IMG/VR virus record: IMGVR_UViG_3300043418_000114
Span: 124,001 to 188,000 of that record
DNA: 64,000 nucleotides
Direction: 5' to 3' (one strand)
The notes under the pieces were generated by a model. It was not told the origin of the DNA, searched no databases, and was given only the letters and a program-made list of their open reading frames with translations. Position 1 is the first letter of the stretch; each line of letters starts with the position of its first letter. Below, one piece after another: positions 28,776-51,052 of this stretch. The position numbers were made by a program, and so were the translations under genes.

Positions 28776-28782
28776 ATTTTGG

Positions 28783-28811
28783 TTGACACTAAATGGGTTT
28801 GGACATATAAT
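28783..28811 (+). promoter_or_regulatory. Consensus sigma70 early promoter
   Basis: TTGACA-CTAAATGGGTTTGGACA-TATAAT. Confidence 0.8.
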
Positions 28812-28817
28812 GCAATC

Positions 28818-30101
28818 ATGAAAAAACTTATTATTCTCCTGTCTATCGTTTTAACTGCATGTGGCGGAGGTGGTGGCGGATCAGCCAGTACTGCAACTGC
28901 TCCAGTTAACCCATGTGTGTTGAAAACGTATAACTCTCAGCCTCTTCCTGAGTATGCAGGTGCTCATTCACTTCCTGCTCCGTCGAATTTGAAATTTGAT
29001 GCGTCGGTGCAACGTGCAATTGGATTGAAAGACTATTACCCAGGCGGCGAAAACAACGGCTGTGCATCTAACAAAGACTATGCTCGTCTGTTGTATCAGA
29101 AGACATTGGATCGACTGCAAACACTGAACATTGATGTTGTTGAAATCTACCAGTACGGACCAGTTGATGATTTCAATGCAACAACGTGGACTGCGGATAA
29201 ATCTAAATGGCAAATTCCAGAGAGTGAATTGATTTGGTTTATCAAAGAAGCAAATAGCAGAAACATCAAAGTGAGTTTGATCTGGCAACTGTGGGGCGTT
29301 GATTCCAAAGGCAACACCATTGATACCAGCATGTCTACATCCGAAGCCTACATGTTGAAGGTTCTTCGTGGCTGGCACAACATCATTGTTGATATGGCAA
29401 AGTTAGGTGGTAGCAATGGTCTAAACATGTTGACCATTGAGTGGAATGCGTTCTACTTTCCTGTGATGACTAATTATCCGGTGAGTGCAACGACCGAATT
29501 CGTAGCTATCGTGGATGATATTCGTCAATACTTTAATGGCAAGTTGTTCATGCAAGCATCGCCAATCTTCTTTGATGGCCGATTGCTCAACAAAGTAGAT
29601 GCAGTCATTGTGCCGCTGAACCCAGCGAACTGGACGCACGTAGATGACACAAACATGTCTGTTGGTCTACTCAAGAGTAGGTATGCAGATGATATTTTTG
29701 GTAAAGCACTTGCACTGTCGATTGCAACTGGTGTGAATGCATCTAGTATTCCTGTGATCTGGGACTTGAACATTCAGAGTCGTGACCGAGCATTAAGCGA
29801 TGGCTGGGTAGAAGATGGATTCTGCATCACACAGGTTGGCAGTTCACCAACGACCTTTTCTAACCCATCATGTATGCAAAAAAACTATGTAACTGATTTT
29901 AGTGTGCAGGCAAATGCAGTCGAGGCAGTGTTCCAAGCTATCAAAGAGCAAACATATGTAAAGACGTACGGCATTATTTTCAGCACTAGTTACTGGCTCA
30001 CTGACACCATGACACCTGGCGAAGAAGGCTTTCCTAATTTGTCACAAAGCATTCGTGGCAAGCCAGCAGAAACTATCGTGAAGAATTGGTTTAGTAAATA
30101 A
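28818..30101 (+). CDS. Lipoprotein with glycoside-hydrolase-like TIM barrel (GH113/clan-A-like)
   Basis: Lipobox LTA-C plus Gly linker; alternating beta/alpha pattern; LTIEWN candidate catalytic Glu. Confidence 0.5.
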   Translation: MKKLIILLSIVLTACGGGGGGSASTATAPVNPCVLKTYNSQPLPEYAGAHSLPAPSNLKFDASVQRAIGLKDYYPGGENNGCASNKDYARLLYQKTLDRLQTLNIDVVEIYQYGPVDDFNATTWTADKSKWQIPESELIWFIKEANSRNIKVSLIWQLWGVDSKGNTIDTSMSTSEAYMLKVLRGWHNIIVDMAKLGGSNGLNMLTIEWNAFYFPVMTNYPVSATTEFVAIVDDIRQYFNGKLFMQASPIFFDGRLLNKVDAVIVPLNPANWTHVDDTNMSVGLLKSRYADDIFGKALALSIATGVNASSIPVIWDLNIQSRDRALSDGWVEDGFCITQVGSSPTTFSNPSCMQKNYVTDFSVQANAVEAVFQAIKEQTYVKTYGIIFSTSYWLTDTMTPGEEGFPNLSQSIRGKPAETIVKNWFSK

Positions 30102-30104
30102 ACG

Positions 30105-30722
30105 ATGAAGTATAAAATCTTAGGTCGATTAGGTGGAAGTGGTCCATTCATTGCAACAGTCCTACAAAAGATGGGACTTGATGCTCAGTATGATCCTGTC
30201 AATAAGCCAGGTGACAATGATGTAGCTATTCTAGTTACATATCAATACGATATGTTTGCATGGGTGATGACTTCTCGCCATGTCGAAGACACCATATATC
30301 AATATAACTTGGGCAACCGTGAACGATTTGATGCGTGGATACAACACTATGTTGGCCCTGGTGATCCTCAAACGCTAGAAGAAATCTCAATGAGTGACTG
30401 GGCAGAACATGTGGTGCAAAGCTATAGACACATTGGTATGTATGCACCATTGAATGGAATCTTTGAAGATTTAGAATTGATCTGCAAAGATTCACTATGT
30501 GCAAAGCATGATTTGCCACTAGAATTGATTGTAGATAAACCAGAAGAAGCTATTAGTGTAATAGAAAAGATCACAGAAAAAACGATGGACAGTAATACTA
30601 AAGACTTCTTTTTATCTGAACTCAGCAAACAAAAGGCATTACTTTCAACATGGATGGAAGAATACGCTAAAGCAAAAGAAAAATCAACAGATAGTTATTT
30701 GTGGCTAAAACGGTTGACTTAG
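30105..30722 (+). CDS. Hypothetical protein (possibly sulfotransferase-like)
   Basis: 205 aa; weak resemblance only. Confidence 0.45.
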   Translation: MKYKILGRLGGSGPFIATVLQKMGLDAQYDPVNKPGDNDVAILVTYQYDMFAWVMTSRHVEDTIYQYNLGNRERFDAWIQHYVGPGDPQTLEEISMSDWAEHVVQSYRHIGMYAPLNGIFEDLELICKDSLCAKHDLPLELIVDKPEEAISVIEKITEKTMDSNTKDFFLSELSKQKALLSTWMEEYAKAKEKSTDSYLWLKRLT

Positions 30723-30742
30723 AATAATTTTGGGCATATAAT
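30714..30742 (+). promoter_or_regulatory. sigma70 early promoter
   Basis: TTGACT-N17-TATAAT. Confidence 0.75.
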
Positions 30743-30774
30743 ACACTCATTGTTCAACGCACCGGAGAAATCAA

Positions 30775-31041
30775 ATGGGTTACATCGTTTTTCATACTGC
30801 CGCACCTCACGCTGAAAAGCGTTATTTCAAGACTGCCGCAGGCGCGAAGCGTAGTGCAACTTGTTCTAATCGGAATGCCGGTACTAATGTGTACCAAGCA
30901 ATGGAAGAAACTTTCTTTGCTATCGTTCATCCTCGTGGCACCAAGACTGTAAAGAGTTTGATGACAGGTCAAAACGTTGAAATTCCGGAAGACACTCCTT
31001 GGTGTTGCAATCCTGCTAGCGAATCGTACTGGAGCATGTGA
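30775..31041 (+). CDS. Hypothetical early protein
   Basis: GGAG RBS; VKSLMTGQNVEIPEDTPWCCNPASESYWSM. Confidence 0.7.
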   Translation: MGYIVFHTAAPHAEKRYFKTAAGAKRSATCSNRNAGTNVYQAMEETFFAIVHPRGTKTVKSLMTGQNVEIPEDTPWCCNPASESYWSM

Positions 31042-31238
31042 TGAAAGTCTATCAACTGACCGCAAGACGAGCAGATGGTGGTATCACTGATTGGAACTAC
31101 AATCCAATCTATGCTACACTCGAAGGTGCTGAAAAGCAAAAAGAAATCGAATTCAATGCATACACCAAAGTCAACGGCGTGGTGATGTTTGAATGTCCCT
31201 ATATTTTTGAGATTAGAGAATTTGAGGTAAAAGAATGA
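31041..31238 (+). CDS. Hypothetical early protein
   Basis: Coupled ORF. Confidence 0.55.
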   Translation: MKVYQLTARRADGGITDWNYNPIYATLEGAEKQKEIEFNAYTKVNGVVMFECPYIFEIREFEVKE

Positions 31239-31459
31239 ACAACCGAATCAATGAACTCGCAGTCCAAGCTGGTGGAATCTGGCGTGGTGGCTATGTTGAA
31301 CAACCCAACGGTGATAGTGTCTACACAGACCAGAAGTTTGTTCACGGTGGAGACATGGATGTAGAACAATTCGCCCGACTGTTGGTGAAAGAATGTTGCG
31401 ATGTAGTTGATTACAACAATGCTCGGGCAATCGTTAATCATTTAGGAGTTGAAGAATGA
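31235..31459 (+). CDS. MNERIKEL-family cassette protein
   Basis: MNNRINELAVQA...EQFARLLVKEC...HLGVEE. Confidence 0.7.
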   Translation: MNNRINELAVQAGGIWRGGYVEQPNGDSVYTDQKFVHGGDMDVEQFARLLVKECCDVVDYNNARAIVNHLGVEE

Positions 31460-31659
31460 ACAAATACTTTCACATCGTTTATGTCCACCCCGTAGAGAAC
31501 GGTGAGCCCAACACTTACAAGGTTGTTCTTGAAAAAGAATTTACAACCAAACAGCAGGCAGACAAGTTCATTTTGTTGTTCAACACACCTGATATCAAAT
31601 TATATGTTGAGGCAGTCTATCTAGGCTGTGTCAACGATGAAACCGGAGAACTGGTATGA
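31456..31659 (+). CDS. Hypothetical early protein
   Basis: ATGA-coupled. Confidence 0.6.
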   Translation: MNKYFHIVYVHPVENGEPNTYKVVLEKEFTTKQQADKFILLFNTPDIKLYVEAVYLGCVNDETGELV

Positions 31660-31892
31660 ACGAACGAATTAAACAACTTGCTGAACAGGCTACGACTTAC
31701 ATTGAGCCAACATCAACAAGCGGTGAAGGTTGGATCTTTGACAAAGAAAAGTTCGCCGAGTTGATTGTCAAGGAATGTGCTAAAGTTATCGTGAACGGTG
31801 GTTATTGGTCGGGTGGTCCACTTGGTCCTAAGAGACAATGCACTCCGCCAGAGATTGCTCAAATGATTAAAGAATATTTTGGAGTTGAATGA
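31656..31892 (+). CDS. MNERIKEL-family cassette protein
   Basis: MNERIKQLAEQA...EKFAELIVKEC...EYFGVE. Confidence 0.75.
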   Translation: MNERIKQLAEQATTYIEPTSTSGEGWIFDKEKFAELIVKECAKVIVNGGYWSGGPLGPKRQCTPPEIAQMIKEYFGVE

Positions 31893-32098
31893 TGGACGAC
31901 TATAAACATTCAGTAAGTGTAATTCTTGTTGACAACATGAACCGATTACAACGAGGAGAAATCACTAAGCAACAATTACTGGCACTAGTCCACAGTCTAG
32001 AAGCGATTAGCATTGACGAAACGCAGAGCAATTTTTTCAAGTCGTATTATGAACTTTTGGATCAGGTTGAAAAACAACATTTCGGAGTTGAAGAATGA
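31889..32098 (+). CDS. Cassette protein sharing only the HFGVEE end
   Basis: Ends KQHFGVEE. Confidence 0.6.
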   Translation: MMDDYKHSVSVILVDNMNRLQRGEITKQQLLALVHSLEAISIDETQSNFFKSYYELLDQVEKQHFGVEE

Positions 32099-32277
32099 CA
32101 CGAGAACAAATGATGGCGTTGTTTGAAAAGTCCTGTGCTAACTGGGGATTTGATTTCACTAAAGATGATACAGGTCCTAATGGAGTAATCTATGCTTCAT
32201 ATGAAACCGGTGTGATGTTTGGCATGTTTGATATAGGCTTTGATACAGCAAAAGAACATTTTGGAGTTAAAGAATGA
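32095..32277 (+). CDS. Cassette protein sharing only the HFGVxE end
   Basis: Ends KEHFGVKE. Confidence 0.6.
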   Translation: MTREQMMALFEKSCANWGFDFTKDDTGPNGVIYASYETGVMFGMFDIGFDTAKEHFGVKE

Positions 32278-32540
32278 AAACAAATGACGAACTATTTGAT
32301 ATGGTGACAAAACTGGACCATCCTATGGCTCGTAAACTGAAAGAACTACGCATTGAGGCTTTCAAGTTGCCAACCACTAGTGATGCTGAAAAGTTTTTAT
32401 CAGAGTGGAAGAAGAACAACCCCGAAGAAGCAACAGCCATGCGTGAGTTTATCATGAGTATTGAAATTGAATATAAAGAAGGTCGCCGTGAAGTTAAATC
32501 ACAGTTAGGTTACAGTCGCATTGGATTGGGTAATGTATGA
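32274..32540 (+). CDS. Hypothetical early protein
   Basis: ATGA-coupled. Confidence 0.6.
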   Translation: MKTNDELFDMVTKLDHPMARKLKELRIEAFKLPTTSDAEKFLSEWKKNNPEEATAMREFIMSIEIEYKEGRREVKSQLGYSRIGLGNV

Positions 32541-32791
32541 ACAAACAACTAATATATGATCTTGCTGTAAAGCATAAGCATATTTGTGGTGAACTACCAT
32601 TGAATGTAGTTGAAGAACTCGCCCTTGTTGGATTGGAACTATTTGCTGAGGTAATTGTTCGGGAATGTATTAAGTCTATTCAATCAGACATGGATCGTGA
32701 GACAATGAACGGAACTATATCTTTAGCAAAACACGCAGGTATGGTATCAGCAAAAACGGTTATCAAAAAACACTTCGGAGTTGAAGAATGA
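32537..32791 (+). CDS. MNERIKEL-family cassette protein (divergent)
   Basis: ELFAEVIVREC...KKHFGVEE. Confidence 0.65.
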   Translation: MNKQLIYDLAVKHKHICGELPLNVVEELALVGLELFAEVIVRECIKSIQSDMDRETMNGTISLAKHAGMVSAKTVIKKHFGVEE

Positions 32792-32976
32792 CACGGTATT
32801 ATTTGAATCTAAAGTTTAACAACTTAGACAACAGTTTATATACTGATTATCAAGCTGTTATGCAGATTGAAATCATCACTGATGATATCAGTCACGCACA
32901 TTTGCTTGGTCAACGTTGGATGAAGGTCATGGACGCCGATGAATATCAACTGGTAAAAATGTACAAGGTATCGTAA
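32788..32976 (+). CDS. Hypothetical early protein
   Basis: ATGA-coupled. Confidence 0.55.
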   Translation: MTRYYLNLKFNNLDNSLYTDYQAVMQIEIITDDISHAHLLGQRWMKVMDADEYQLVKMYKVS

Positions 32977-33173
32977 TGGAACTGACGATTTCTATAGCCT
33001 TGATTGGTAAGAGTATGCTGTTCGCACTCTTATCGATGCTCTTGGTAATGTTCATTCTGTTTCCAATCAATGATCGCCCAACTAGTCGAGGGCAAGTTAT
33101 TGTTTGGATCATTAGTGAAGTGCTTCTACTCTCCGTGATCTTTGATTTTATTTCTTTTCGAATAGTTGCTTGA
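32976..33173 (+). CDS. Small two-TM membrane protein
   Basis: Two hydrophobic helices. Confidence 0.55.
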   Translation: MELTISIALIGKSMLFALLSMLLVMFILFPINDRPTSRGQVIVWIISEVLLLSVIFDFISFRIVA

Positions 33174-33198
33174 CAATAAATGGTTTTGGGTATATAAT
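33170..33198 (+). promoter_or_regulatory. Consensus sigma70 early promoter
   Basis: TTGACA-ATAAATGGTTTTGGGTA-TATAAT. Confidence 0.8.
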
Positions 33199-33229
33199 TC
33201 ATCCATTGTCAAACAAAACGGAGATTATC

Positions 33230-33472
33230 ATGAACAAAGCCAAAGTCACTAAAATTCTTGTTAACTGCAAAGATTTCAACGGTTACAAAAATTGCATCTT
33301 CATGATGAAGTCTGATGATTTCCGTCTGACTAACAGCTACATGGGCAATGTCATTGAGTTTGGCTACACAAAGATTGCTGATGGCAAATTCAACACAAAA
33401 GAACGTAAGTTTGTAACTGATGCTGGTGATACTTACAAAGTCTACCGCGATTGGTCAGCAGAAAAAATTTGA
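33230..33472 (+). CDS. Hypothetical early protein
   Basis: GGAG RBS before ATG 33230. Confidence 0.65.
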   Translation: MNKAKVTKILVNCKDFNGYKNCIFMMKSDDFRLTNSYMGNVIEFGYTKIADGKFNTKERKFVTDAGDTYKVYRDWSAEKI

Positions 33473-33479
33473 AAAATGG

Positions 33480-33508
33480 TTGACAGTAAATAATTTTGGA
33501 CATATAAT
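33480..33508 (+). promoter_or_regulatory. Consensus sigma70 early promoter
   Basis: TTGACA-GTAAATAATTTTGGACA-TATAAT. Confidence 0.8.
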
Positions 33509-33538
33509 ACAGTCATGTTTAATATACGGAGAATCAGA

Positions 33539-33742
33539 ATGTCACTCGAAGATGTAGCTCTTGGAATTGTCAACCCATCATTGCAAAATGGCGAAATGGC
33601 TGAATTCGATTATGGCACTTTGTTTTTGCACTGCACTGAAAAGACTAGTCGCAAAGTGTTCTCCGATCTGTTCATTGAATTCAACGGTAAAGTAAAAATC
33701 TCTACTGTTGGTTACGAATACGCAATTGACTTCACCGCTTAA
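33539..33742 (+). CDS. Hypothetical early protein
   Basis: GGAG RBS before ATG 33539. Confidence 0.6.
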   Translation: MSLEDVALGIVNPSLQNGEMAEFDYGTLFLHCTEKTSRKVFSDLFIEFNGKVKISTVGYEYAIDFTA

Positions 33743-33751
33743 GGAATAATC

Positions 33752-34528
33752 ATGCCAGGTTTTATTGACGTTTCTCATATGTCTAATGAAGATGTTCGTC
33801 GCATGGGTCATGCTGATGACTATGATGAAGAATACGTGCCTAGTAAACCATCGTATCCTACGTACACTCGTAGCACATACACTAACAAGCCTCGTGCTAC
33901 TCGCCAAGTTGTCAGCCACAAAGCTGATGATGTATGGTCTGCCTCATGTGCGGCATTCCGTATCAACGGTTCATATGTCAAAGTCGCTGTGGTTGATGAA
34001 CGTGGTCTTAAGACCAACCGTGCAATCATGGATGAACTCTTGCTGGATCCTACTAAGATCACCCAAGAAGATCGTGAACAAGGTGAAGCTGTTCGTCGTT
34101 ATTTTAAAAGCCAGACCTTTAAGATTCTTGAAGGCAGAGACTTGAGCCAGTTTATGCGTAGTGCAATGGAGATTGCAGAGAAGGATAACATCGCTTCGGC
34201 GTATGATATCGCTGTGATCACCAGCTTGCCTGCCACTTATGTTAATGCGGCTAAGCGTGATGGCGTCGATAGTCGTATCAAGTGGGCGCGTGGTGGCTAC
34301 ATTGGTGATGTAGGTCACAAAGTCGAAACTAAGATTGAAATCGTTAAGCGCCTGTGGTCTGAAAAGTATTCCACTTGGTATGTAACTGGTATCAATGAAC
34401 AAGATCAAGTTGTTTTCTTTTCTTTTAAGAAACAAGTTGAAATTGGTGATACAATGACTATCGAAGGCAAAGTCAAATCACAACGTGAAACTTCCACTCA
34501 ACTCTCTCATGTAAAGGTGAAATCATGA
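33752..34528 (+). CDS. Hypothetical protein with C-terminal OB-fold-like domain
   Basis: GGYIGDVGHKV...VEIGDTMTIEGKVKSQ...TQLSHVKV. Confidence 0.6.
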   Translation: MPGFIDVSHMSNEDVRRMGHADDYDEEYVPSKPSYPTYTRSTYTNKPRATRQVVSHKADDVWSASCAAFRINGSYVKVAVVDERGLKTNRAIMDELLLDPTKITQEDREQGEAVRRYFKSQTFKILEGRDLSQFMRSAMEIAEKDNIASAYDIAVITSLPATYVNAAKRDGVDSRIKWARGGYIGDVGHKVETKIEIVKRLWSEKYSTWYVTGINEQDQVVFFSFKKQVEIGDTMTIEGKVKSQRETSTQLSHVKVKS

Positions 34529-34649
34529 AAAACTTTATTCTTGGTACTATTTTTGGCATCGTCATTGCTACTGTCGGATTCGGTGGCATCGCAAAAATGC
34601 TTGACAACGGCATCGAGAAAACAAAAACAATCGCAGTGGAGAGCGCAAA

Positions 34650-34865
34650 ATGATCTTCACTAAAGAACAAATTGCACAAGCACTTGATGCACTGCCAAAA
34701 GAAAATCGCCCAGTGATGACTGCGATCATTGGTCAACTTCAGGCTAAACTGTTCGAACTCAAGCACGAAGTAAGCACCGATCCAATTAACAAGCCATTTG
34801 AATTGAATCCAAAGTTTGTTGCCAAGTGTGACGAAATCGGTCGTAGCCGTCGTCAATTTCAATAA
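34650..34865 (+). CDS. Hypothetical protein
   Basis: 71 aa with GGAG RBS. Confidence 0.6.
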   Translation: MIFTKEQIAQALDALPKENRPVMTAIIGQLQAKLFELKHEVSTDPINKPFELNPKFVAKCDEIGRSRRQFQ

Positions 34866-34873
34866 GGAGTTGA

Positions 34874-35116
34874 ATGATGAACGAACACACAAAACTACTT
34901 ATTATGAAGGCAGGTGGAATCATTTGTTCCACAGAAGCCACTGGTCACATTGACAAAATTGATTACTTACACTTTGATGCGGAAAAGTTCGCCGAGTTGC
35001 TTGTTAAGGAATGTGCGACCATAGACTTCACTGAAAAATCTAAAGGTAACTTCAATGCCCTGCAAACTAATTGGATTAGTAATATCATCATTGAACACTT
35101 TGAGGACGAAGAATGA
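34874..35116 (+). CDS. MNERIKEL-family cassette protein
   Basis: EKFAELLVKEC...IEHFEDEE. Confidence 0.7.
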   Translation: MMNEHTKLLIMKAGGIICSTEATGHIDKIDYLHFDAEKFAELLVKECATIDFTEKSKGNFNALQTNWISNIIIEHFEDEE

Positions 35117-35475
35117 GAACACTTAATAAAACAGGCTTGCTAATTTGTTTAGCATTGGTGTCTGCATCGGCCTTGCTTACTGGTTGCAATGAAAATCGTG
35201 ACCGAACAGTGGGCAACGTTGAATACGAAATCAAAGCTGATGGATGTGTTGTCAAAGCTATTGACAACCCCAAAGGTCCTAACTTCTTCATTGCTAAGTG
35301 CCCAGCGGCTAGCGAAACAACTACTTACCAATACCAACAGGGTAAGACTACACGACCACTGGCAACAGTAGTCACAAGTGACGACCTCCGCAATCAATTA
35401 GCTGAGGTTGAAGCAAAAGAAAAAGCCCTGTCTAAATTGACAGAAACAGAAAAGAAACTTCTAGGAGTACAATGA
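35113..35475 (+). CDS. Lipoprotein
   Basis: Lipobox LLTG-C. Confidence 0.65.
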   Translation: MRTLNKTGLLICLALVSASALLTGCNENRDRTVGNVEYEIKADGCVVKAIDNPKGPNFFIAKCPAASETTTYQYQQGKTTRPLATVVTSDDLRNQLAEVEAKEKALSKLTETEKKLLGVQ

Positions 35476-35635
35476 TGGAAATCAAATGGTTTATGATTGC
35501 AATGTCAGTGATGTTCGGTGGTGGCATGGCTGCCGCTGGTATTGGTGAATATCAAAAAGGTCAGTGTAAGATTGCTTACGTGCAGTCGAACAAGACTGCC
35601 GAAGAAATCAATCGAATCTGTAAGTGAAGTGAATC

Positions 35636-36079
35636 ATGGGTCTAGATATGTACGCATACGTTGGTCGTGCTGGACAACGTGAGGAATACTGGGACCAGTA
35701 TGGTGAAGATATTTCCGAGGATAAAAAAGTAAGTAAGCCTCAAGAACTTGCCTACTGGCGTAAACATCCCAATCTTCATGGTTGGATGGAACGACTTTGG
35801 TTGAGAAAGAATGGGTACGCACTTTCAGAAGATCAGCAGTTCATCGAAGGCAAGCAAGCGCCAGACTTCAACGGGGTTGAACTTGAATTGACCTTTGACG
35901 ATATTCTTGCACTTGAGCGTGATATCAATAATGGTAAGATGGCAAAGTTGGGTACTACTGGTTTCTTCTTTGGTAATCCTAGCGATGACCACTACAAAGA
36001 ATATGACCTTAAGTTTTGCATTGATGCTAAGGCAGAATTGTTCCTTGGTCGTAAAGTTTTCTACAATTCAAGTTGGTAG
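35636..36079 (+). CDS. Phage hypothetical protein (MGLDMY...YWRKHPNLHGWM type)
   Basis: Recurrent phage motif; ends FYNSSW. Confidence 0.75.
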   Translation: MGLDMYAYVGRAGQREEYWDQYGEDISEDKKVSKPQELAYWRKHPNLHGWMERLWLRKNGYALSEDQQFIEGKQAPDFNGVELELTFDDILALERDINNGKMAKLGTTGFFFGNPSDDHYKEYDLKFCIDAKAELFLGRKVFYNSSW

Positions 36080-36106
36080 CAACTAAATACGCTACACAGG
36101 TGCGGC

Positions 36107-36313
36107 ATGCTTAAAAATATAATAATCACAATTCTCGGTCTTTTCATTGTAGTCTTTTGGCTAAAAGAAGAACCAGAGGACATGGTGAGTGATGATCCAA
36201 ATGATGTTACAATTGAATACAAATGTAACGAACTGGATACGTATGAAAGTGTGCCTGTCGAAGTCATCGAAGAATGCAAGAGTCGTGGCTTTGCTGTGCG
36301 CGATACTATTTGA
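36107..36313 (+). CDS. Small membrane protein
   Basis: N-terminal TM and two Cys. Confidence 0.6.
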   Translation: MLKNIIITILGLFIVVFWLKEEPEDMVSDDPNDVTIEYKCNELDTYESVPVEVIEECKSRGFAVRDTI

Positions 36314-36338
36314 CATACAACCATCAATCTGATATAAT
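36310..36338 (+). promoter_or_regulatory. Consensus sigma70 promoter of the ligase
   Basis: TTGACA-N17-TATAAT. Confidence 0.75.
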
Positions 36339-36362
36339 CTATCAATTGATTAGGAGAAACTA

Positions 36363-37712
36363 ATGTCCGCATCGTGGATTCAAAAACTGAATGAGTCTGA
36401 TAGTCGTCTTCACAAAGAGGACGTACTGCAACAAGCACTCGAAGCCGCTACGCTCGGTAGCACAAATTCAATTACTTTCTTGAGCTATCTCAAGTCATGT
36501 TATAACCCATTCTTGACTTTTGGTGTCAAGCAGATTCCTGACACTGTTGGCATCACTGGTGCTGATAATCCCTGGAGTGAATTCAATCAACTCATGATCG
36601 ATCTTGGTCAACGCAAGTTGACTGGACACGCCGCACGTGATGCGATTCTAGAACTGTCAGAGCGTTTTGATTCGGAAGAATGGAACACATTCCTTGCTCC
36701 GGTACTGCGCCGCGACATGCGTTGTGGTATCAGCGAGAAGACTATCAACAAAATCTGTAAAAAGACTGACTACGAAATCCCCGTGTTTGGTTGCCAACTA
36801 GCAACTAACTCGGAAGGTCGTCCTGAAATGAAGGGTATCAAACGACTTGAGCCTAAGTTGGATGGTGTTCGTGCCCTGTTCATGGTCATTCCAAGTGACG
36901 ACGGTGAAGTGACTACAATCTGTTTCAGTCGCAATGGCAAACAGTTTGATAACTTTACTCACATTGAAGATCAACTTCGTACTAACTTCATTAACATTGT
37001 TAATGCATGTAACGGCACTGATCAAGGTCGTGGACTAGTTCATGGCTTTGTTATGGATGGCGAAGTGATCGGCAATACATTCCAAGAATTGATGCGCCAA
37101 GCTCGTCGCAAGAGTGACGTACAAGCTGATGATAGCGTATTCAATATCTTTGATATCGTACCACTAGCTGACTTCCGTCGTGGCTACTGGAATGCTCAAC
37201 TTGAAAAGCGTATCAAGCTCCTCGAAGCTATGCGTACGGTGGTCGACGACATGCCTAACGTTGAACTGTTGCCTCATTTGATGGTCGACTTGAGCACCGC
37301 AGAAGGCCAAGATCAATTGCATCGTTATGCTGTAGATCAAGTCAATGCTGGATTTGAAGGCATCATGATTAAAGAAATGCAATCCCCATATCAGTGCAAG
37401 CGTAGTACTGATTGGATGAAATGGAAGCCTACTATCACTGTTGACCTTGAAGTCATTGGCGTTGAAGAAGGTACTGGTCGTAACGTTGGTCGTCTTGGTG
37501 CACTTGTATGTGCAGGCATTGATGATGGCAAAGAGATTTTCGTAAACGTTGGTAGTGGTCTCAGTGATGCAGACCGAGATGAATTCTGGGCCAATCGTAA
37601 TGTAGTTATTGGTCGCACTGTTGAAATTTTATGTGATGTGATTACACAAAACCAAGATGGTACTTACAGCCTGCGTTTCCCTCGCTTTGTTCGCTTCCGT
37701 GATGACAAGTGA
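36363..37712 (+). CDS. lig: ATP-dependent DNA ligase
   Basis: EPKLDGVR (motif I), VMDGEV, FNIFD, FEGIMIK, WMKWK, SLRFPRF. Confidence 0.95.
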   Translation: MSASWIQKLNESDSRLHKEDVLQQALEAATLGSTNSITFLSYLKSCYNPFLTFGVKQIPDTVGITGADNPWSEFNQLMIDLGQRKLTGHAARDAILELSERFDSEEWNTFLAPVLRRDMRCGISEKTINKICKKTDYEIPVFGCQLATNSEGRPEMKGIKRLEPKLDGVRALFMVIPSDDGEVTTICFSRNGKQFDNFTHIEDQLRTNFINIVNACNGTDQGRGLVHGFVMDGEVIGNTFQELMRQARRKSDVQADDSVFNIFDIVPLADFRRGYWNAQLEKRIKLLEAMRTVVDDMPNVELLPHLMVDLSTAEGQDQLHRYAVDQVNAGFEGIMIKEMQSPYQCKRSTDWMKWKPTITVDLEVIGVEEGTGRNVGRLGALVCAGIDDGKEIFVNVGSGLSDADRDEFWANRNVVIGRTVEILCDVITQNQDGTYSLRFPRFVRFRDDK

Positions 37713-38026
37713 TGTTATACGTTGAATATAAATGGGCCAAACGCCCAGGACGCATGGGAATATTCCACAAGAGCAAACGAGTTGGCGTTAGGTCTAAGTT
37801 TGTTCGTGGAAGTCAACCAGGTCTAGCGCGTTGGAAGATTGCCAATCTAACAGACGAATACAAACCGCATGAATTCTTTGCTATTCTGAGTTTTGATAAT
37901 CTCAGTAATTGGGTTGAGAATAGTCCGCAGTGTAATCCAAGACTACAAGCGGCCTACAATAAACATAGATTCATACGTGGCAATATTGCACATCGTTATA
38001 TTAGACGACTGAGTGGTGAAGAATGA
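37709..38026 (+). CDS. Hypothetical protein
   Basis: Coupled to the ligase stop. Confidence 0.45.
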   Translation: MMLYVEYKWAKRPGRMGIFHKSKRVGVRSKFVRGSQPGLARWKIANLTDEYKPHEFFAILSFDNLSNWVENSPQCNPRLQAAYNKHRFIRGNIAHRYIRRLSGEE

Positions 38027-38144
38027 CATTAACTAAGATTGAATTAAACAAGGACAATCGCATGTTGCGTATTGGCTTTGGTAAGAATGACGGCAACTGG
38101 TTTGCCCGTGTTGACTTGTGGTGTGTGGGATTTAGGATCATACA

Positions 38145-38381
38145 ATGAACGAACGAATTAAAGAACTTGCTGAACAGGCTTATGAACAACAGCCGCTGAT
38201 GATTGCTAATCCCGAAACATTTGAAATTGAACATAAGATTGGCAACGGTGGAGTTCCTATATATCATAAAGTGTTTAACCAAGAAAAGTTCGCCGAGTTA
38301 ATTGTTCGGGAATGTATTGCTCAATGTAATGATGGTGATAGTCGGTGGTTTATCGCACAACATTTTGGAATTGAAGAATGA
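38145..38381 (+). CDS. MNERIKEL-family cassette protein
   Basis: MNERIKELAEQA...EKFAELIVREC...QHFGIEE. Confidence 0.75.
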   Translation: MNERIKELAEQAYEQQPLMIANPETFEIEHKIGNGGVPIYHKVFNQEKFAELIVRECIAQCNDGDSRWFIAQHFGIEE

Positions 38382-38725
38382 ACGAACGAATTAAAGAACT
38401 AGTAAGACTAGTCCAATCCCTTAAAGATAGATTTTTTGTCAAGCGACCTGTAGATATACTACTAGGTGAGTATTGGGCACAATTAGAAGAATTGTGGAAA
38501 AGTGAACTTATTAATCTGCCCAGGTGTGCCCCGGGTAAACTGTATTACGCCAGTGATATCATAAAATTTATAGAACAAGATGTGGCACCAAAATATGGAT
38601 TTAAATTAATCCGTAAACCAAATGAAACCCACAATGGGTTGTTGAAGGATATACCCTGTTACTGGATTAGATTCAATGACCCCAAGAAGGTAACAAGATT
38701 TACAACAGAGTTCGGAGTTGAATGA
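38378..38725 (+). CDS. Chimeric cassette protein (family termini, unrelated core)
   Basis: Begins MNERIKEL and ends EFGVE but lacks EKFAEL/EC. Confidence 0.65.
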   Translation: MNERIKELVRLVQSLKDRFFVKRPVDILLGEYWAQLEELWKSELINLPRCAPGKLYYASDIIKFIEQDVAPKYGFKLIRKPNETHNGLLKDIPCYWIRFNDPKKVTRFTTEFGVE

Positions 38726-38931
38726 TGAACGAGCAAACAAGAATTAAGTATTCGTATGTTTCTATTTTACCAGAAGAAATGTCACCATATTCATCTGCGG
38801 TTAGAATAAGTCACAAGGATTCTACTGTTAAAGAATTGTTAGATCAGTTGTGTGTGAATAGTCAGATCAAAGATGAAAATGGTAAAATTGTGAGCAGTAT
38901 TTTCGATATCAATTACGAGGTTATTGAATGA
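38722..38931 (+). CDS. Hypothetical protein
   Basis: ATGA-coupled. Confidence 0.55.
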   Translation: MMNEQTRIKYSYVSILPEEMSPYSSAVRISHKDSTVKELLDQLCVNSQIKDENGKIVSSIFDINYEVIE

Positions 38932-39185
38932 ACGAACGAATTAAAGAACTTGCTGAACAGGCTGGCTGTGGCTATTTGTATGATTATTCAGCAGACGGAC
39001 ATGCAATGGTTTGTAATGTAAATGACATTGAAAAGTTTGCCGAGTTGCTTGTCAAGGAATGTGCTATGCTTGTCGAGGGATTTATACTTGATCAAGAGGT
39101 AGCTCTTGACGAATATGTTGAATATGAAGCAAGTAGTGTACTTCGAGAACACTTTGAAATAAACAGTGAAAGTAAATCTACATGA
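38928..39185 (+). CDS. MNERIKEL-family cassette protein
   Basis: MNERIKELAEQA...EKFAELLVKEC...REHFEI. Confidence 0.75.
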   Translation: MNERIKELAEQAGCGYLYDYSADGHAMVCNVNDIEKFAELLVKECAMLVEGFILDQEVALDEYVEYEASSVLREHFEINSESKST

Positions 39186-39379
39186 AAGAATCAGTAAGCC
39201 GTGAAGAACTCTCTGAAATTATCAACCGAGAGTTATTGGCATTTGTCGGGCATCCTAATACCGAAAAGACTAGACAAGCCATCTTTGAAATGATATTATC
39301 TTTAGTTAATAGGTTTCCTGAGAAAATTGATTTGATTCAAGAAATCATACAAGAAGGAATGAAGAATGAATCCACATGA
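39182..39379 (+). CDS. Hypothetical protein
   Basis: Coupled ORF. Confidence 0.5.
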   Translation: MKESVSREELSEIINRELLAFVGHPNTEKTRQAIFEMILSLVNRFPEKIDLIQEIIQEGMKNEST

Positions 39380-39572
39380 TTTAGAGGGCAAGAAATATAT
39401 ATTTGAAGATGGTGCTGAAATATTCATTAAGCACGTAAAAGACGTTGATGCTGAACGCGGTACACTTCAGGTAACATATCTTGTCACAACTAGTCCTAGA
39501 AGCATACCTAGACAACTCATACTACCATGGCAAGAGTTTCAGGAGCACTATGGACACTTGTTTAAAGAATAA
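39366..39572 (+). CDS. Hypothetical protein
   Basis: 68 aa with AGGA RBS. Confidence 0.55.
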   Translation: MNPHDLEGKKYIFEDGAEIFIKHVKDVDAERGTLQVTYLVTTSPRSIPRQLILPWQEFQEHYGHLFKE

Positions 39573-50650: not shown

Positions 50651-50871
50651 AATATATTCCATTATTTGTTATTGTAACATTTTGTGGTATTGCCGGTCTT
50701 ATTGGATCGACTATCGTTATGACGTTCAGCAAGATCGAAACAAGATATAACTGTGAGTTAGCAGAAATTAGTCCTGACTTTCCAATCAAGGCAAAGCAGG
50801 AATGCAGAGAATTAAGGATAAAAAATGAAAAAGGAACTATTCAAGGAGATAGCACTACAAGCGGGCGGTAG
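50647..50871 (+). CDS. Small membrane protein
   Basis: TM plus C..EISPDFP....C. Confidence 0.55.
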   Translation: MKYIPLFVIVTFCGIAGLIGSTIVMTFSKIETRYNCELAEISPDFPIKAKQECRELRIKNEKGTIQGDSTTSGR

Positions 50872-51052
50872 TCATTATCCAGGTGTTGGTGGTGAAACGT
50901 TAGAGCGTTTCGCCGATTTGCTTTTGCAGGAAGTGATCAAGGCAGTAGAATCTACCCCAAGACATTGTGCATACACCACCTATGATTTGGGTGTAGTTGA
51001 ATGCACTATCGAGAAAACAATCAACACAATCAAAGAACGATTCGAGGTATAA
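50825..51052 (+). CDS. Distant MNERIKEL-family member
   Basis: KEIALQAGG...ERFADLLLQEV...IKERFEV. Confidence 0.6.
   Translation: MKKELFKEIALQAGGSHYPGVGGETLERFADLLLQEVIKAVESTPRHCAYTTYDLGVVECTIEKTINTIKERFEV

Follow-up and report, generated by a model that had tools for sequence, protein, structure and literature searches.

An uncultured 364-kb freshwater jumbo phage carries arrays of very small, probably early genes that belong to a very large, unnamed family, and the two variable halves of these genes are reshuffled almost freely by recombination at three short conserved DNA blocks, giving a natural mix-and-match generator of protein variants. We put the probability of this reading at about 0.8. 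The region studied lies in a window of 64,000 nucleotides of the phage genome (IMG/VR record IMGVR_UViG_3300043418_000114, positions 124,001 to 188,000). The original prediction, made from the sequence of this window alone, was that ORFs sharing conserved ends form an integrase-free, homology-driven system that swaps payloads and variable loops while keeping translational coupling intact. Both the observation and the homology-driven shuffling are supported by our analysis.

We first looked at the family ORFs of the window (Table 1). Six ORFs between 31235 and 39185, all on the + strand, share MNERIKELAEQA / EKFAELIV(K/R)EC / HFGVEE. A profile HMM built from these ORFs scored them at E = 1e-22 to 6e-37, and scored the distant ORF 50825 at 2.5e-4, improving to 9e-12 after one iteration. 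A search for DNA repeats recovered the start repeat (38144-38180 is identical to 38927-38963 over 37 nt, and 31655-31691 matches at 95%) as well as the central and junction repeats. The junction 21-mer CATTTYGGAGTTGAAGAATGA occurs 5 times with at most 1 mismatch (31439, 32078, 32257, 32771 and 38361), against 0.01 expected from shuffles, and the 26-nt start motif occurs 4 times against 0.00 expected. The shorter variant ..GGAGTTGAATGATG lies at 31877, 38711 and 34863. Three further ORFs (31889, 32095 and 38378) had been described as sharing only the termini of the family; they are real but not equivalent, since the first two carry only the C-block whereas 38378 carries 23 nt of the N-block plus a C-block variant. 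None of them reached significance against the family HMM (E of about 0.8 or worse for 38378 and 31889, and 32095 was not listed at all).

Table 1. Features of the arrays and their surroundings (window coordinates). L and P numbers denote compared sequences.
Position	Strand	Feature	Remarks
30714..30742	+	Sigma-70-type promoter (11 of 12)	Member of a conserved ~44-nt promoter repeat; likely early promoter of the first array
31038..31238	+	Non-family ORF (66 aa)	Last codons (..EFEVKE, stop) resemble the C-block; stop overlaps the start of 31235
31235..31459	+	Family gene, diverged copy	Central block 31364-31396; N-block, V1 and central block recur at 90% DNA identity in hybrid contig L087
31456..31659	+	Non-family ORF (67 aa)	Between two family genes, 4-nt overlaps at both ends
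31656..31892	+	Family gene	Central block 31746-31778; AF2 model pLDDT 83.5; V1 recurs at 94% with unrelated V2 in P0049 and P0070
31889..32098	+	ORF (69 aa), unrelated core	Only the family C-block (..QHFGVEE, stop); junction 21-mer exact at 32078-32098
32095..32277	+	ORF (60 aa)	C-block (..EHFGVKE) and at most a faint central-block remnant; either truncated or chimeric
32274..32540	+	ORF (88 aa)	Ends in a second conserved 3' block (..LGYSRIGLGNV, stop), carried in other phages on ORFs with unrelated cores, usually just upstream of a family gene
32537..32791	+	Family gene	Central block 32636-32668; V2 recurs at 87-100% with unrelated V1 in P0016, P0003 and P0033
33170..33198	+	Perfect sigma-70 consensus promoter (12 of 12)	Same conserved promoter repeat
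33480..33508	+	Perfect sigma-70 consensus promoter (12 of 12)	Same conserved promoter repeat
34874..35116	+	Family gene	Central block 34982-35014; V2 recurs at 96% with unrelated V1 in P0004
36310		Perfect promoter	
36363..37712	+	ATP-dependent DNA ligase	Conserved backbone gene used as synteny anchor; not part of the family
38145..38381	+	Family gene	N-block 38145-38180, central block 38283-38315, C-block and junction 38361-38381; AF2 model pLDDT 90.7; V1 pairs with at least 4 different V2 elsewhere, V2 recurs at 100% with unrelated V1
38378..38725	+	Chimeric ORF (115 aa)	23 nt of the family N-block plus about 40 nt, fused to an unrelated core, ending ..EFGVE; core homologue P0122 lacks the N-block
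38722..38931	+	ORF (69 aa)	Degenerate block-like ends (MMNEQTRIK.., ..NYEVIE); replaced by a different gene in the 93%-identical relative L088
38928..39185	+	Family gene	N-block 38928-38963 identical to 38145-38180; central block 39030-39062; C-terminus departs from the consensus
50825..51052	+	Distant family member	V1 recurs at 85% with unrelated V2 in L083

Each gene of this family, whose products are about 75 residues long, is composed of an N-block (about 36 nt), a first variable module V1 (1-43 codons), a central block (about 33 nt), a second variable module V2 (0-50 codons) and a C-block (about 21 nt). In the AF2 models the N-block encodes helix 1, V1 forms a beta-hairpin or small sheet, the central block is the start of helix 2 and the C-block is the end of helix 3; the two models have the same three predicted helices with V1 as beta structure. 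The C-block also provides the translation signals of the next gene, with GGAG lying 7-8 nt before an ATG that overlaps the TGA as ATGA. Two abutting family genes are therefore joined by about 53 nt of conserved DNA.

On one point the original prediction, which described a cassette array, had to be corrected, as the array is not a local peculiarity. The complete genome holds 15 copies in about five clusters, 8 of them outside the window, and the same three blocks are the consensus of a metagenomic family with more than 7,900 homologues in a search that was saturated. We found 356 copies in 80 viral contigs, usually 2-15 per locus in same-strand arrays with 4-nt overlaps, and 1 to 13 copies in five other large viral records. 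No known family could be assigned: Pfam and PHROGs gave nothing above the cut-off, there was no GenBank-phage match, the best hit of a PDB profile search was a designed repeat protein (E = 0.017), Foldseek against PDB gave no hit at 1e-3 or better, a wide VIA-align search reached at best Z = 3.7, and BFVD and the ESM Atlas returned only uncharacterised viral proteins.

We then asked whether V1 and V2 are inherited together. Comparison of 318 genes showed that the two modules are in linkage equilibrium, with no correlation between V1 and V2 identity (r = 0.003) and a median identity of the partner module of 0.23, equal to background. Fifty-nine gene pairs have V1 at 80% identity or more with V2 under 30%, 53 pairs show the reverse, and only 5 pairs are alike in both. 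Moreover, 38 of 39 recurrent V1 clusters and 44 of 46 recurrent V2 clusters have more than one partner. Breakpoints are sharp and lie inside the blocks, and linkage across the gene junction is also broken. The unit exchanged is mainly the half-gene module, and not only the whole gene between junctions.

The window's own genes are mosaics (Table 1), and hybrids of two of them exist elsewhere: contig L087 joins the N-block and V1 of 31235 to the V2 and C-block of 32537, with the crossover in the central block. Similarly, L010|1436 carries V1 of one paralogue and V2 of another paralogue in the same contig. The original prediction would have been contradicted if relatives had identical order and content between junctions. 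This was not the case, since L088, a contig 93% identical in DNA to window 38144-38732, has different genes on both sides, with the change falling exactly at the start of the N-block and just after the C-block junction. Two syntenic relatives, whose ligase is 80-82% identical at the protein level, carry 3 and 6 family genes between the same anchor genes where this genome has 2 plus a chimera, and no module is shared with them. The module also resembles a distant phage, L004, more than the compared backbone segment does (91% against 64%). Payload fusion was shown for 38378, as a homologue of its core lacks the N-block. Occasional illegitimate joins of this kind probably also gave rise to 31889 and 32095, but their chimeric origin is not demonstrated, since their cores have no homologues in the 80 viral loci compared and the large protein database was searched only for 38378.

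These data contradict the view that the family arose by old tandem duplications followed by vertical divergence, with blocks conserved only as protein core and ribosome-binding site. In favor of that view, the blocks coincide with the three helices of the AF2 models, GGAG and the ATGA overlap explain part of the C-block, and shared modules are under purifying selection (pN/pS of about 0.16) with substantial synonymous divergence. However, one module can be 100% identical while the other is unalignable and of different length, the neighbors of the array differ in a 93%-identical relative, and rare codons are fixed at synonymous sites, so that this explanation is very unlikely unless the contigs concerned proved to be misassembled. 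The synonymous divergence nevertheless indicates that many modules are old and conserved, and exchange need not be frequent on short time scales. Recent tandem amplification is not supported either: the 15 copies in this genome share no V1 or V2 module with one another (the best being 0.40), and sharing within a contig is rare (6-7 of 884 pairs) and involves a single module only.

All comparative data come from metagenome assemblies, and without raw reads ongoing recombination inside a population is not shown. Assemblers might jump between paralogues at the repeated blocks, and Logan k = 31 contigs do break at the blocks. We consider it highly improbable that the mosaics are such artefacts. 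The same arrays were assembled at 100% identity over 4.2 kb from four samples, the contig with the intragenomic hybrid was assembled at 99.9% from two samples, and the hybrid L087 and L085, another of the compared sequences, come from k141 assemblies whose word length exceeds every block. The window genome is a closed record with direct terminal repeats. In addition, the pair 38145 and 38378 recurs in an independent JGI contig, and the core of 38378 and the downstream ORF 38722 recur in run X5. In favor of the shuffling itself, contig depth spikes exactly on the blocks in three independent freshwater metagenomes, with heterogeneous sequence starting at the block edges.

Codons inside the blocks are near-fixed and many are rare. 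The share of the favored codon against its background share is 87% against 11% for CGA, 70% against 15% for CTT, 80% against 17% for GCC, 82% against 28% for TTG and 91% against 19% for GGA. Such conservation would suit a recognition site for a dedicated enzyme, and a 364-kb genome has many unannotated genes. Profile searches of the complete genome, however, gave no match to RVT_1, Phage_integrase or Resolvase, whereas a UvsX-like recombinase was found (E = 5e-66). Variants differ by whole unalignable segments of different length and not by adenine-directed point changes, all repeats are direct and not inverted, and the family occurs in contigs from 4 kb up to more than 350 kb with very different backbones. 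A diversity-generating retroelement, an integron- or shufflon-like recombinase or a block-cutting nuclease is thus improbable. We infer that the exchanges are made by general recombination, using the UvsX-like recombinase and possibly host functions, with no site-specific enzyme involved, and that constant exchange together with protein and ribosome-binding constraints, which alone explain part of the block conservation, keeps the blocks homogeneous down to synonymous sites.

Alternatively, the blocks could be conserved mainly for an RNA-level or translational role (coupling, start-region accessibility or a regulatory RNA target), recombination being an unselected by-product. The C-block is demonstrably the SD, stop and start signal of the next gene, unrelated ORFs in L085 also end in ..GVEE followed by a stop, and the N-block is A-rich, as start regions usually are. 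In contrast, RNA folds of two junctions and two central blocks gave no structure signal (z-scores from -0.26 to +0.43), and the central block, which is mid-gene with no obvious translational role, fixes rare codons (GCC, GAG, TTG). This explanation, which we regard as doubtful but not negligible, concerns conservation only and does not dispute the shuffling itself.

The closest known systems are the PeSL mobile regulatory cassettes in the hyperplastic regions of T4-type phages (Arbiol et al. 2010, PMC2839356; Comeau et al. 2014, PMC4122927). There too, short conserved repeats in early, non-essential, ORFan-rich regions carry expression signals (SD and start) and serve as substrates for homologous recombination that inserts, deletes and replaces small genes between close relatives without a site-specific recombinase. 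PeSLs, however, are intergenic promoter plus stem-loop elements, whereas here the repeats are in-frame coding sequence of one protein family, contain neither promoter nor stem-loop, and include a third, mid-gene block, so that exchange also operates below the gene level. Perfect sigma-70 promoters, part of a conserved ~44-nt repeat, lie in and beside the arrays, and we infer that the genes are early genes read from sigma-70-type promoters.

The gp38 adhesins of T-even phages (Trojet et al. 2011, PMC3157838) likewise alternate a conserved structural framework with independently interchangeable hypervariable segments, separated by conserved glycine-rich motifs, a modular design proposed to ease swapping of specificity determinants. 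This is an analogy, as there is no sequence or fold relation to gp38, which is a single-copy virion protein with a known role in receptor binding and four variable segments; here a multi-copy array encodes non-structural proteins of unknown role with two variable modules, and the terminal blocks double as inter-cistronic junctions. Polymorphic toxin systems (PMC3482391) and, it would seem, cassette-based antigenic variation also combine a constant frame with a pool of variable cassettes recombined by general homologous recombination at conserved flanks, with unrelated payloads attached to a constant end. They appear to rely on one expressed locus plus silent donor cassettes, whereas here every copy looks expressible and translationally coupled, and exchange is seen across phage lineages and not shown as programmed switching within a clone. 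Diversity-generating retroelements also diversify a variable region of a phage-encoded scaffold protein, but no template/variable repeat pair is present here and shared modules differ mostly at synonymous sites. Integron cassettes similarly form arrays of small promoterless genes separated by a recurring junction, but the junction found here is direct coding sequence with no fold signal, unlike an imperfect inverted attC-like site, and exchange also occurs inside genes.

There is no functional evidence for the proteins. That they form a fixed helical scaffold displaying two independently variable surfaces for binding host or rival targets is only a weak guess, and the host-takeover or anti-defence role suggested in the original prediction is not shown, nor is it shown that this is a selected system rather than a by-product of short conserved coding blocks. 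A more speculative possibility, which we consider unlikely, is that the blocks are maintained as recombination signals in their own right. The family would then be an evolved, enzyme-free combinatorial diversity generator drawing on a shared pool of hundreds of V1 and V2 modules circulating among freshwater phages of unrelated backbones, from which each phage would assemble a personalised repertoire of early host-targeting (for example counter-defence) binders, as a phage counterpart of antigenic-variation cassette systems.

Recombination at short conserved sequences is an accepted route of phage mosaicism, documented mostly between genes (PeSLs, lambdoid boundary sequences) or in single tail-fibre genes. 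Here it operates inside a family of about 75-aa proteins with thousands of members, and is so effective that two halves separated by a 33-nt conserved block are in linkage equilibrium, while the same blocks preserve reading frame and translational coupling. Clustering such proteins by whole-length identity will scatter one family into hundreds of singletons. The family offers a clean natural system for measuring how little homology phage recombination needs, an explanation for a large block of viral 'dark matter' ORFs in freshwater metagenomes, and a ready-made natural library, one scaffold times hundreds of V1 and hundreds of V2 modules, for testing whether such early-gene arrays are counter-defence or host-takeover repertoires.

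The region examined belongs to a single 364,247-bp IMG/VR virus record with direct terminal repeats, rated 100% complete, with a GC content of about 0.40. The runs that hold the region are freshwater metagenomes, and the record is that of an uncultured jumbo phage. We first checked the repeated gene organization. The six ORFs named in the original prediction (31235, 31656, 32537, 34874, 38145 and 38928) indeed share the three motifs, and an HMM built from them scored them at E = 1e-22 to 6e-37, whereas the more distant ORF 50825 was scored at 2.5e-4, improving to 9e-12 after one iteration. A search for repeats recovered the start repeat, which is exact between 38145 and 38928, as well as the central repeat and the junction repeats. 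The junction 21-mer occurs 5 times with at most 1 mismatch (0.01 expected) and the 26-nt start motif 4 times (0 expected). In addition, GGAG lies 7-8 nt before an ATG that overlaps the upstream TGA as ATGA. Of the three ORFs predicted to share only the termini, 31889 and 32095 carry only the C-terminal block, while 38378 carries 23 nt of the start block and a C-block variant; none of them matches the family HMM. The observation is thus confirmed.

We then asked whether this organization was a local device, and found instead that it is a family trait. The same HMM detected 15 copies in the genome, at about 44 kb (2 copies), 155-163 kb (6 copies, those under study), 175 kb (1 copy) and 206-216 kb (6 copies, on the minus strand). 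Interestingly, one paralogue, g215266, has a 1-nt insertion inside the C-block (CATTTTCGGAGTTGAGGAATGA), so the protein ends ..HFRS; the junction DNA survives although its reading frame is lost. A profile search of 5.8 billion proteins returned 7,901 hits at E of 1e-3 or better among the 8,000 candidates scored, so the search was saturated, and all hits are unnamed and without Pfam domains. The consensus of 125 of them is again MNERIKELAEQA .. EKFAELIVREC .. IKEHFGVEE. In IMG/VR, 80 loci from contigs of 4 kb to 354 kb hold 356 copies, usually 2-15 per locus, in same-strand arrays with 4-nt overlaps (up to 15 copies in 5 kb), and five other large viral records hold 1 to 13 copies each. In contrast, megablast of the 8.4-kb region and tblastn with two family members, even at E = 1, found nothing among 50,697 GenBank phage records, and the family therefore seems absent from cultured phages. 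Pfam and PHROGs scans of ten ORFs gave only sub-threshold noise, the PDB profile search, Foldseek against PDB and the VIA-align wide search gave no credible match, and BFVD and the ESM Atlas returned only uncharacterised viral proteins. Of two scans of representative bacterial and archaeal genomes (185,579 genomes), the first found none and the second only six short contigs, binned into freshwater MAGs of unrelated phyla (Bacteroidetes, Alcaligenaceae, Rhodoferax, Aquiluna, Sediminibacterium and Gracilibacteria). These are probably phage contigs swept into bins and give no host signal. The motif strings occur in no paper, and keyword searches of the literature found nothing on this family.

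By HMM columns, each gene reads N-block (codons 1-12), V1 (1-43 residues), central block (11 codons), V2 (0-50 residues) and C-block. Two AlphaFold models, of 31656 (pLDDT 83.5) and 38145 (pLDDT 90.7), agree: in both, helix 1 is the N-block, V1 is a beta-hairpin or small sheet, helix 2 starts at the central block, V2 is the end of helix 2 plus a loop, and helix 3 ends in the C-block. The predicted structure is thus a constant scaffold with two variable inserts. We next looked at the conservation of the blocks as DNA. In 318 distinct genes, the columns that keep the consensus residue use one codon far more often than long ORFs of the same contigs do (see the codon table below). GGA-G is the Shine-Dalgarno of the next gene, which explains part of the C-block, but the N-block and the central block have no such obvious reason. 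RNA structure as the reason for this conservation was rejected, since RNA folding of two junctions and two central blocks gave no signal (z between -0.26 and +0.43).

Codon use at conserved block positions compared with long ORFs of the same contigs
Codon	Share in block	Background share
Arg CGA	87%	11%
Leu CTT	70%	15%
Ala GCC	80%	17%
Glu GAG	83%	26%
Leu TTG	82%	28%
Gly GGA	91%	19%
Val GTT	89%	40%

The decisive result is that the modules reassort. Among 48,205 gene pairs, 59 have V1 at 80% identity or more with V2 under 30%, 53 show the reverse and only 5 are alike in both. After clustering at 70%, 38 of 39 recurrent V1 types occur with more than one V2 type, and 44 of 46 recurrent V2 types with more than one V1 type. 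The correlation between V1 and V2 identity is 0.003; when V1 is 80% identical or more, the median V2 identity is 0.23, equal to background. Linkage across the gene junction, from V2 of one gene to V1 of the next, is broken as well (5 of 6 and 6 of 7). Breakpoints are sharp. In two viral contigs, L021 and L035, the genes L021|8285 and L035|8375 are identical from the N-block through V1 to the middle of the central block, bar one base, and unrelated thereafter, whereas L021|8001 and L035|8375 are unrelated in V1 and about 95% identical from the central block to the end. As the two L021 genes are neighbours, the L035 gene is what unequal crossing-over at the central block would produce. In all module-sharing pairs, similarity ends within or at the edge of the block.

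The genes under study are themselves mosaics. Gene 38145 matches contig L004 at 91% DNA identity over N-block, V1 and central block (172 nt) and then not at all, while the one other segment of the window that aligns with that contig (18072-18904) is 64% identical. The V1 of 38145 is found with at least four different V2, and its V2 recurs at 100% with an unrelated V1. The same pattern holds for 31235, 31656, 32537, 34874, 38928 and 50825, and for four copies outside the window. A 745-nt contig from a k141 assembly encodes a hybrid, the first part of which is 90% identical to window 31231-31396 and the second part 83% identical to 32629-32791; the two overlap in the central block. A 1,237-nt JGI contig is 93% identical to window 38144-38732, which covers 38145 and 38378, but has different genes on both sides, and the change falls at the N-block start and just after the junction. 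Two syntenic relatives (ligase 80-82% identical) carry 3 and 6 family genes between the ligase and the 569-aa gene, against 2 plus a chimera here, and share no module. One of them lacks the whole segment with the first array; in the syntenic relative L061 the missing segment, of about 5 kb, comprises a 440-aa lipoprotein-like ORF, a 205-aa ORF and the first family array, and lies between two conserved genes, so it is a large indel in a hyperplastic region. The data therefore do not bear out the alternative against which the original prediction was set, namely that relatives have identical order and content between junctions.

Coordinates of the features in the window, the genome and the compared contigs
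Feature	Sequence	Coordinates	Strand	Corresponding segments or remarks
Start repeat, first copy	window	38144-38180		identical to 38927-38963
Start repeat, second copy	window	38927-38963		identical to 38144-38180
Promoter, 11-of-12 sigma-70 match at 30714	window	30707-30750
Promoter, perfect sigma-70 consensus at 33170	window	33163-33206
Promoter, perfect sigma-70 consensus at 33480	window	33473-33516
Promoter, perfect sigma-70 consensus at 36310	window	36310-36338
ORF with second conserved 3' block	window	32274-32540		L058:1746-2054, L003:10431-10742, L077:7693-8004, L031:8567-8749 (different phages)
Segment lacking in syntenic relative L061	window	28779-33500		compared with L061:5412-7041
Small lipoprotein-like ORF	window	35113-35475
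Small lipoprotein-like ORF	L085	1447-1659
ATP-dependent ligase	window	36363-37712
UvsX-like recombinase	genome	26608-27681		L084:1417-2490
C-block with 1-nt insertion, g215266	genome	215259-215284	minus	L002:13259-13284
Same-contig hybrid array, first, second and third genes	L010	1436-1648, 3456-3674, 4014-4250		same array in L011

We also studied the payloads found between family ends. ORF 38378 has two homologues. One (91%) keeps the N-block, whereas the other (58%, 89 aa) starts at what is residue 22 of 38378, so it lacks the N-block, and ends in a canonical ..KQHFGVEE. ORF 38378 is thus a fusion of the family start to an unrelated core. For 31889 and 32095, no homologue of the cores was found among the 80 loci. 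Other phages carry unrelated ORFs with family ends, some of them membrane proteins or lipoproteins. Small lipoprotein-like ORFs (signal peptide with a Cys) sit inside the arrays, and the one in contig L085 ends in a C-block-like ..YFKVRE; the arrays therefore also carry envelope-directed small proteins. Junction-sharing is not limited to the HFGVEE block, since a second conserved 3'-terminal coding block (..KSKLGYSRIGLGNV, stop) is shared by ORFs with unrelated cores in different phages and usually lies immediately upstream of a family gene.

As to the mechanism, no reverse transcriptase, tyrosine recombinase or serine recombinase was found in the complete genome, in agreement with the integrase-free character originally proposed. 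The genome does encode a UvsX-like recombinase (RecA domain; phrog_97 at E = 5e-66) which, together with the ATP-dependent ligase, suggests T4-style recombination-dependent replication in this jumbo phage. All repeats are direct. We infer general homologous recombination between blocks of 21-53 nt, both within a genome and between co-infecting phages. A same-contig hybrid was observed in contig L010, where the first gene, L010|1436, carries the V1 of the third gene (94%) and the V2 of the second (100%). Because the blocks are in frame and carry the coupling signals, every product is expressible. Repeated exchange would also homogenise the blocks and, together with protein and ribosome-binding constraints, can explain the synonymous-site conservation. 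Shared modules show pN/pS of about 0.16 and sizeable synonymous divergence; the module pool is therefore old and conserved, not hypermutated, although this sample is biased, since pairs were chosen by amino-acid identity, and the value is used only qualitatively.

The possibility that the mosaics are assembly artefacts was considered. Identical arrays were assembled from four samples (100% over 4.2 kb), the contig with the intragenomic hybrid was assembled from two samples (99.9%), and the k141 assemblies use words longer than any block. In three independent freshwater metagenomes (runs X3, X4 and X5, analysed as Logan contigs over window 33401-39400), contig depth is in the hundreds exactly on the conserved blocks and mostly tens or less on much of the flanking sequence, and heterogeneous sequence begins at the block edges (38145, 38316-7, 38400, 38926-8, 38964-5 and 35014-6). 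These joints are other family members aligning to the blocks, not proven recombinants, and contigs do not inform on recombination within a population. The blocks are among the most abundant viral words in those samples.

Most of the promoters listed in the table belong to a set of 29 near-perfect sigma-70 promoters in the genome, many sharing a conserved extended sequence of about 44 nt. This set clusters in the same regions as the family arrays (29-44 kb, 152-160 kb, 172-174 kb, and 195-219 kb on the minus strand), and early transcription by host polymerase is only inferred. These promoters look like the promoter part of T4-type PeSL cassettes and could themselves mediate gene shuffling. PeSL-mediated modular shuffling in T4-type phages (PMC2839356, PMC4122927) is the closest concept, with the same kind of region, the same reliance on general recombination and the same outcome between relatives. 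However, the defining promoter and stem-loop are absent from the blocks described here, which are coding sequence, and exchange reaches inside the gene. The framework/hypervariable design resembles that of gp38 adhesins (PMC3157838) by analogy only, and DGR, integron, shufflon and recent tandem amplification each fail a defining feature.

Altogether, these data confirm the observation and support the homology-driven mechanism of the original prediction. While a role of the proteins as variable binders of host or rival targets is only a guess, the genes belong to a very large, undescribed family of mosaic phage proteins, inferred to be early, in which recombination-driven modular shuffling extends to exchange inside the gene.
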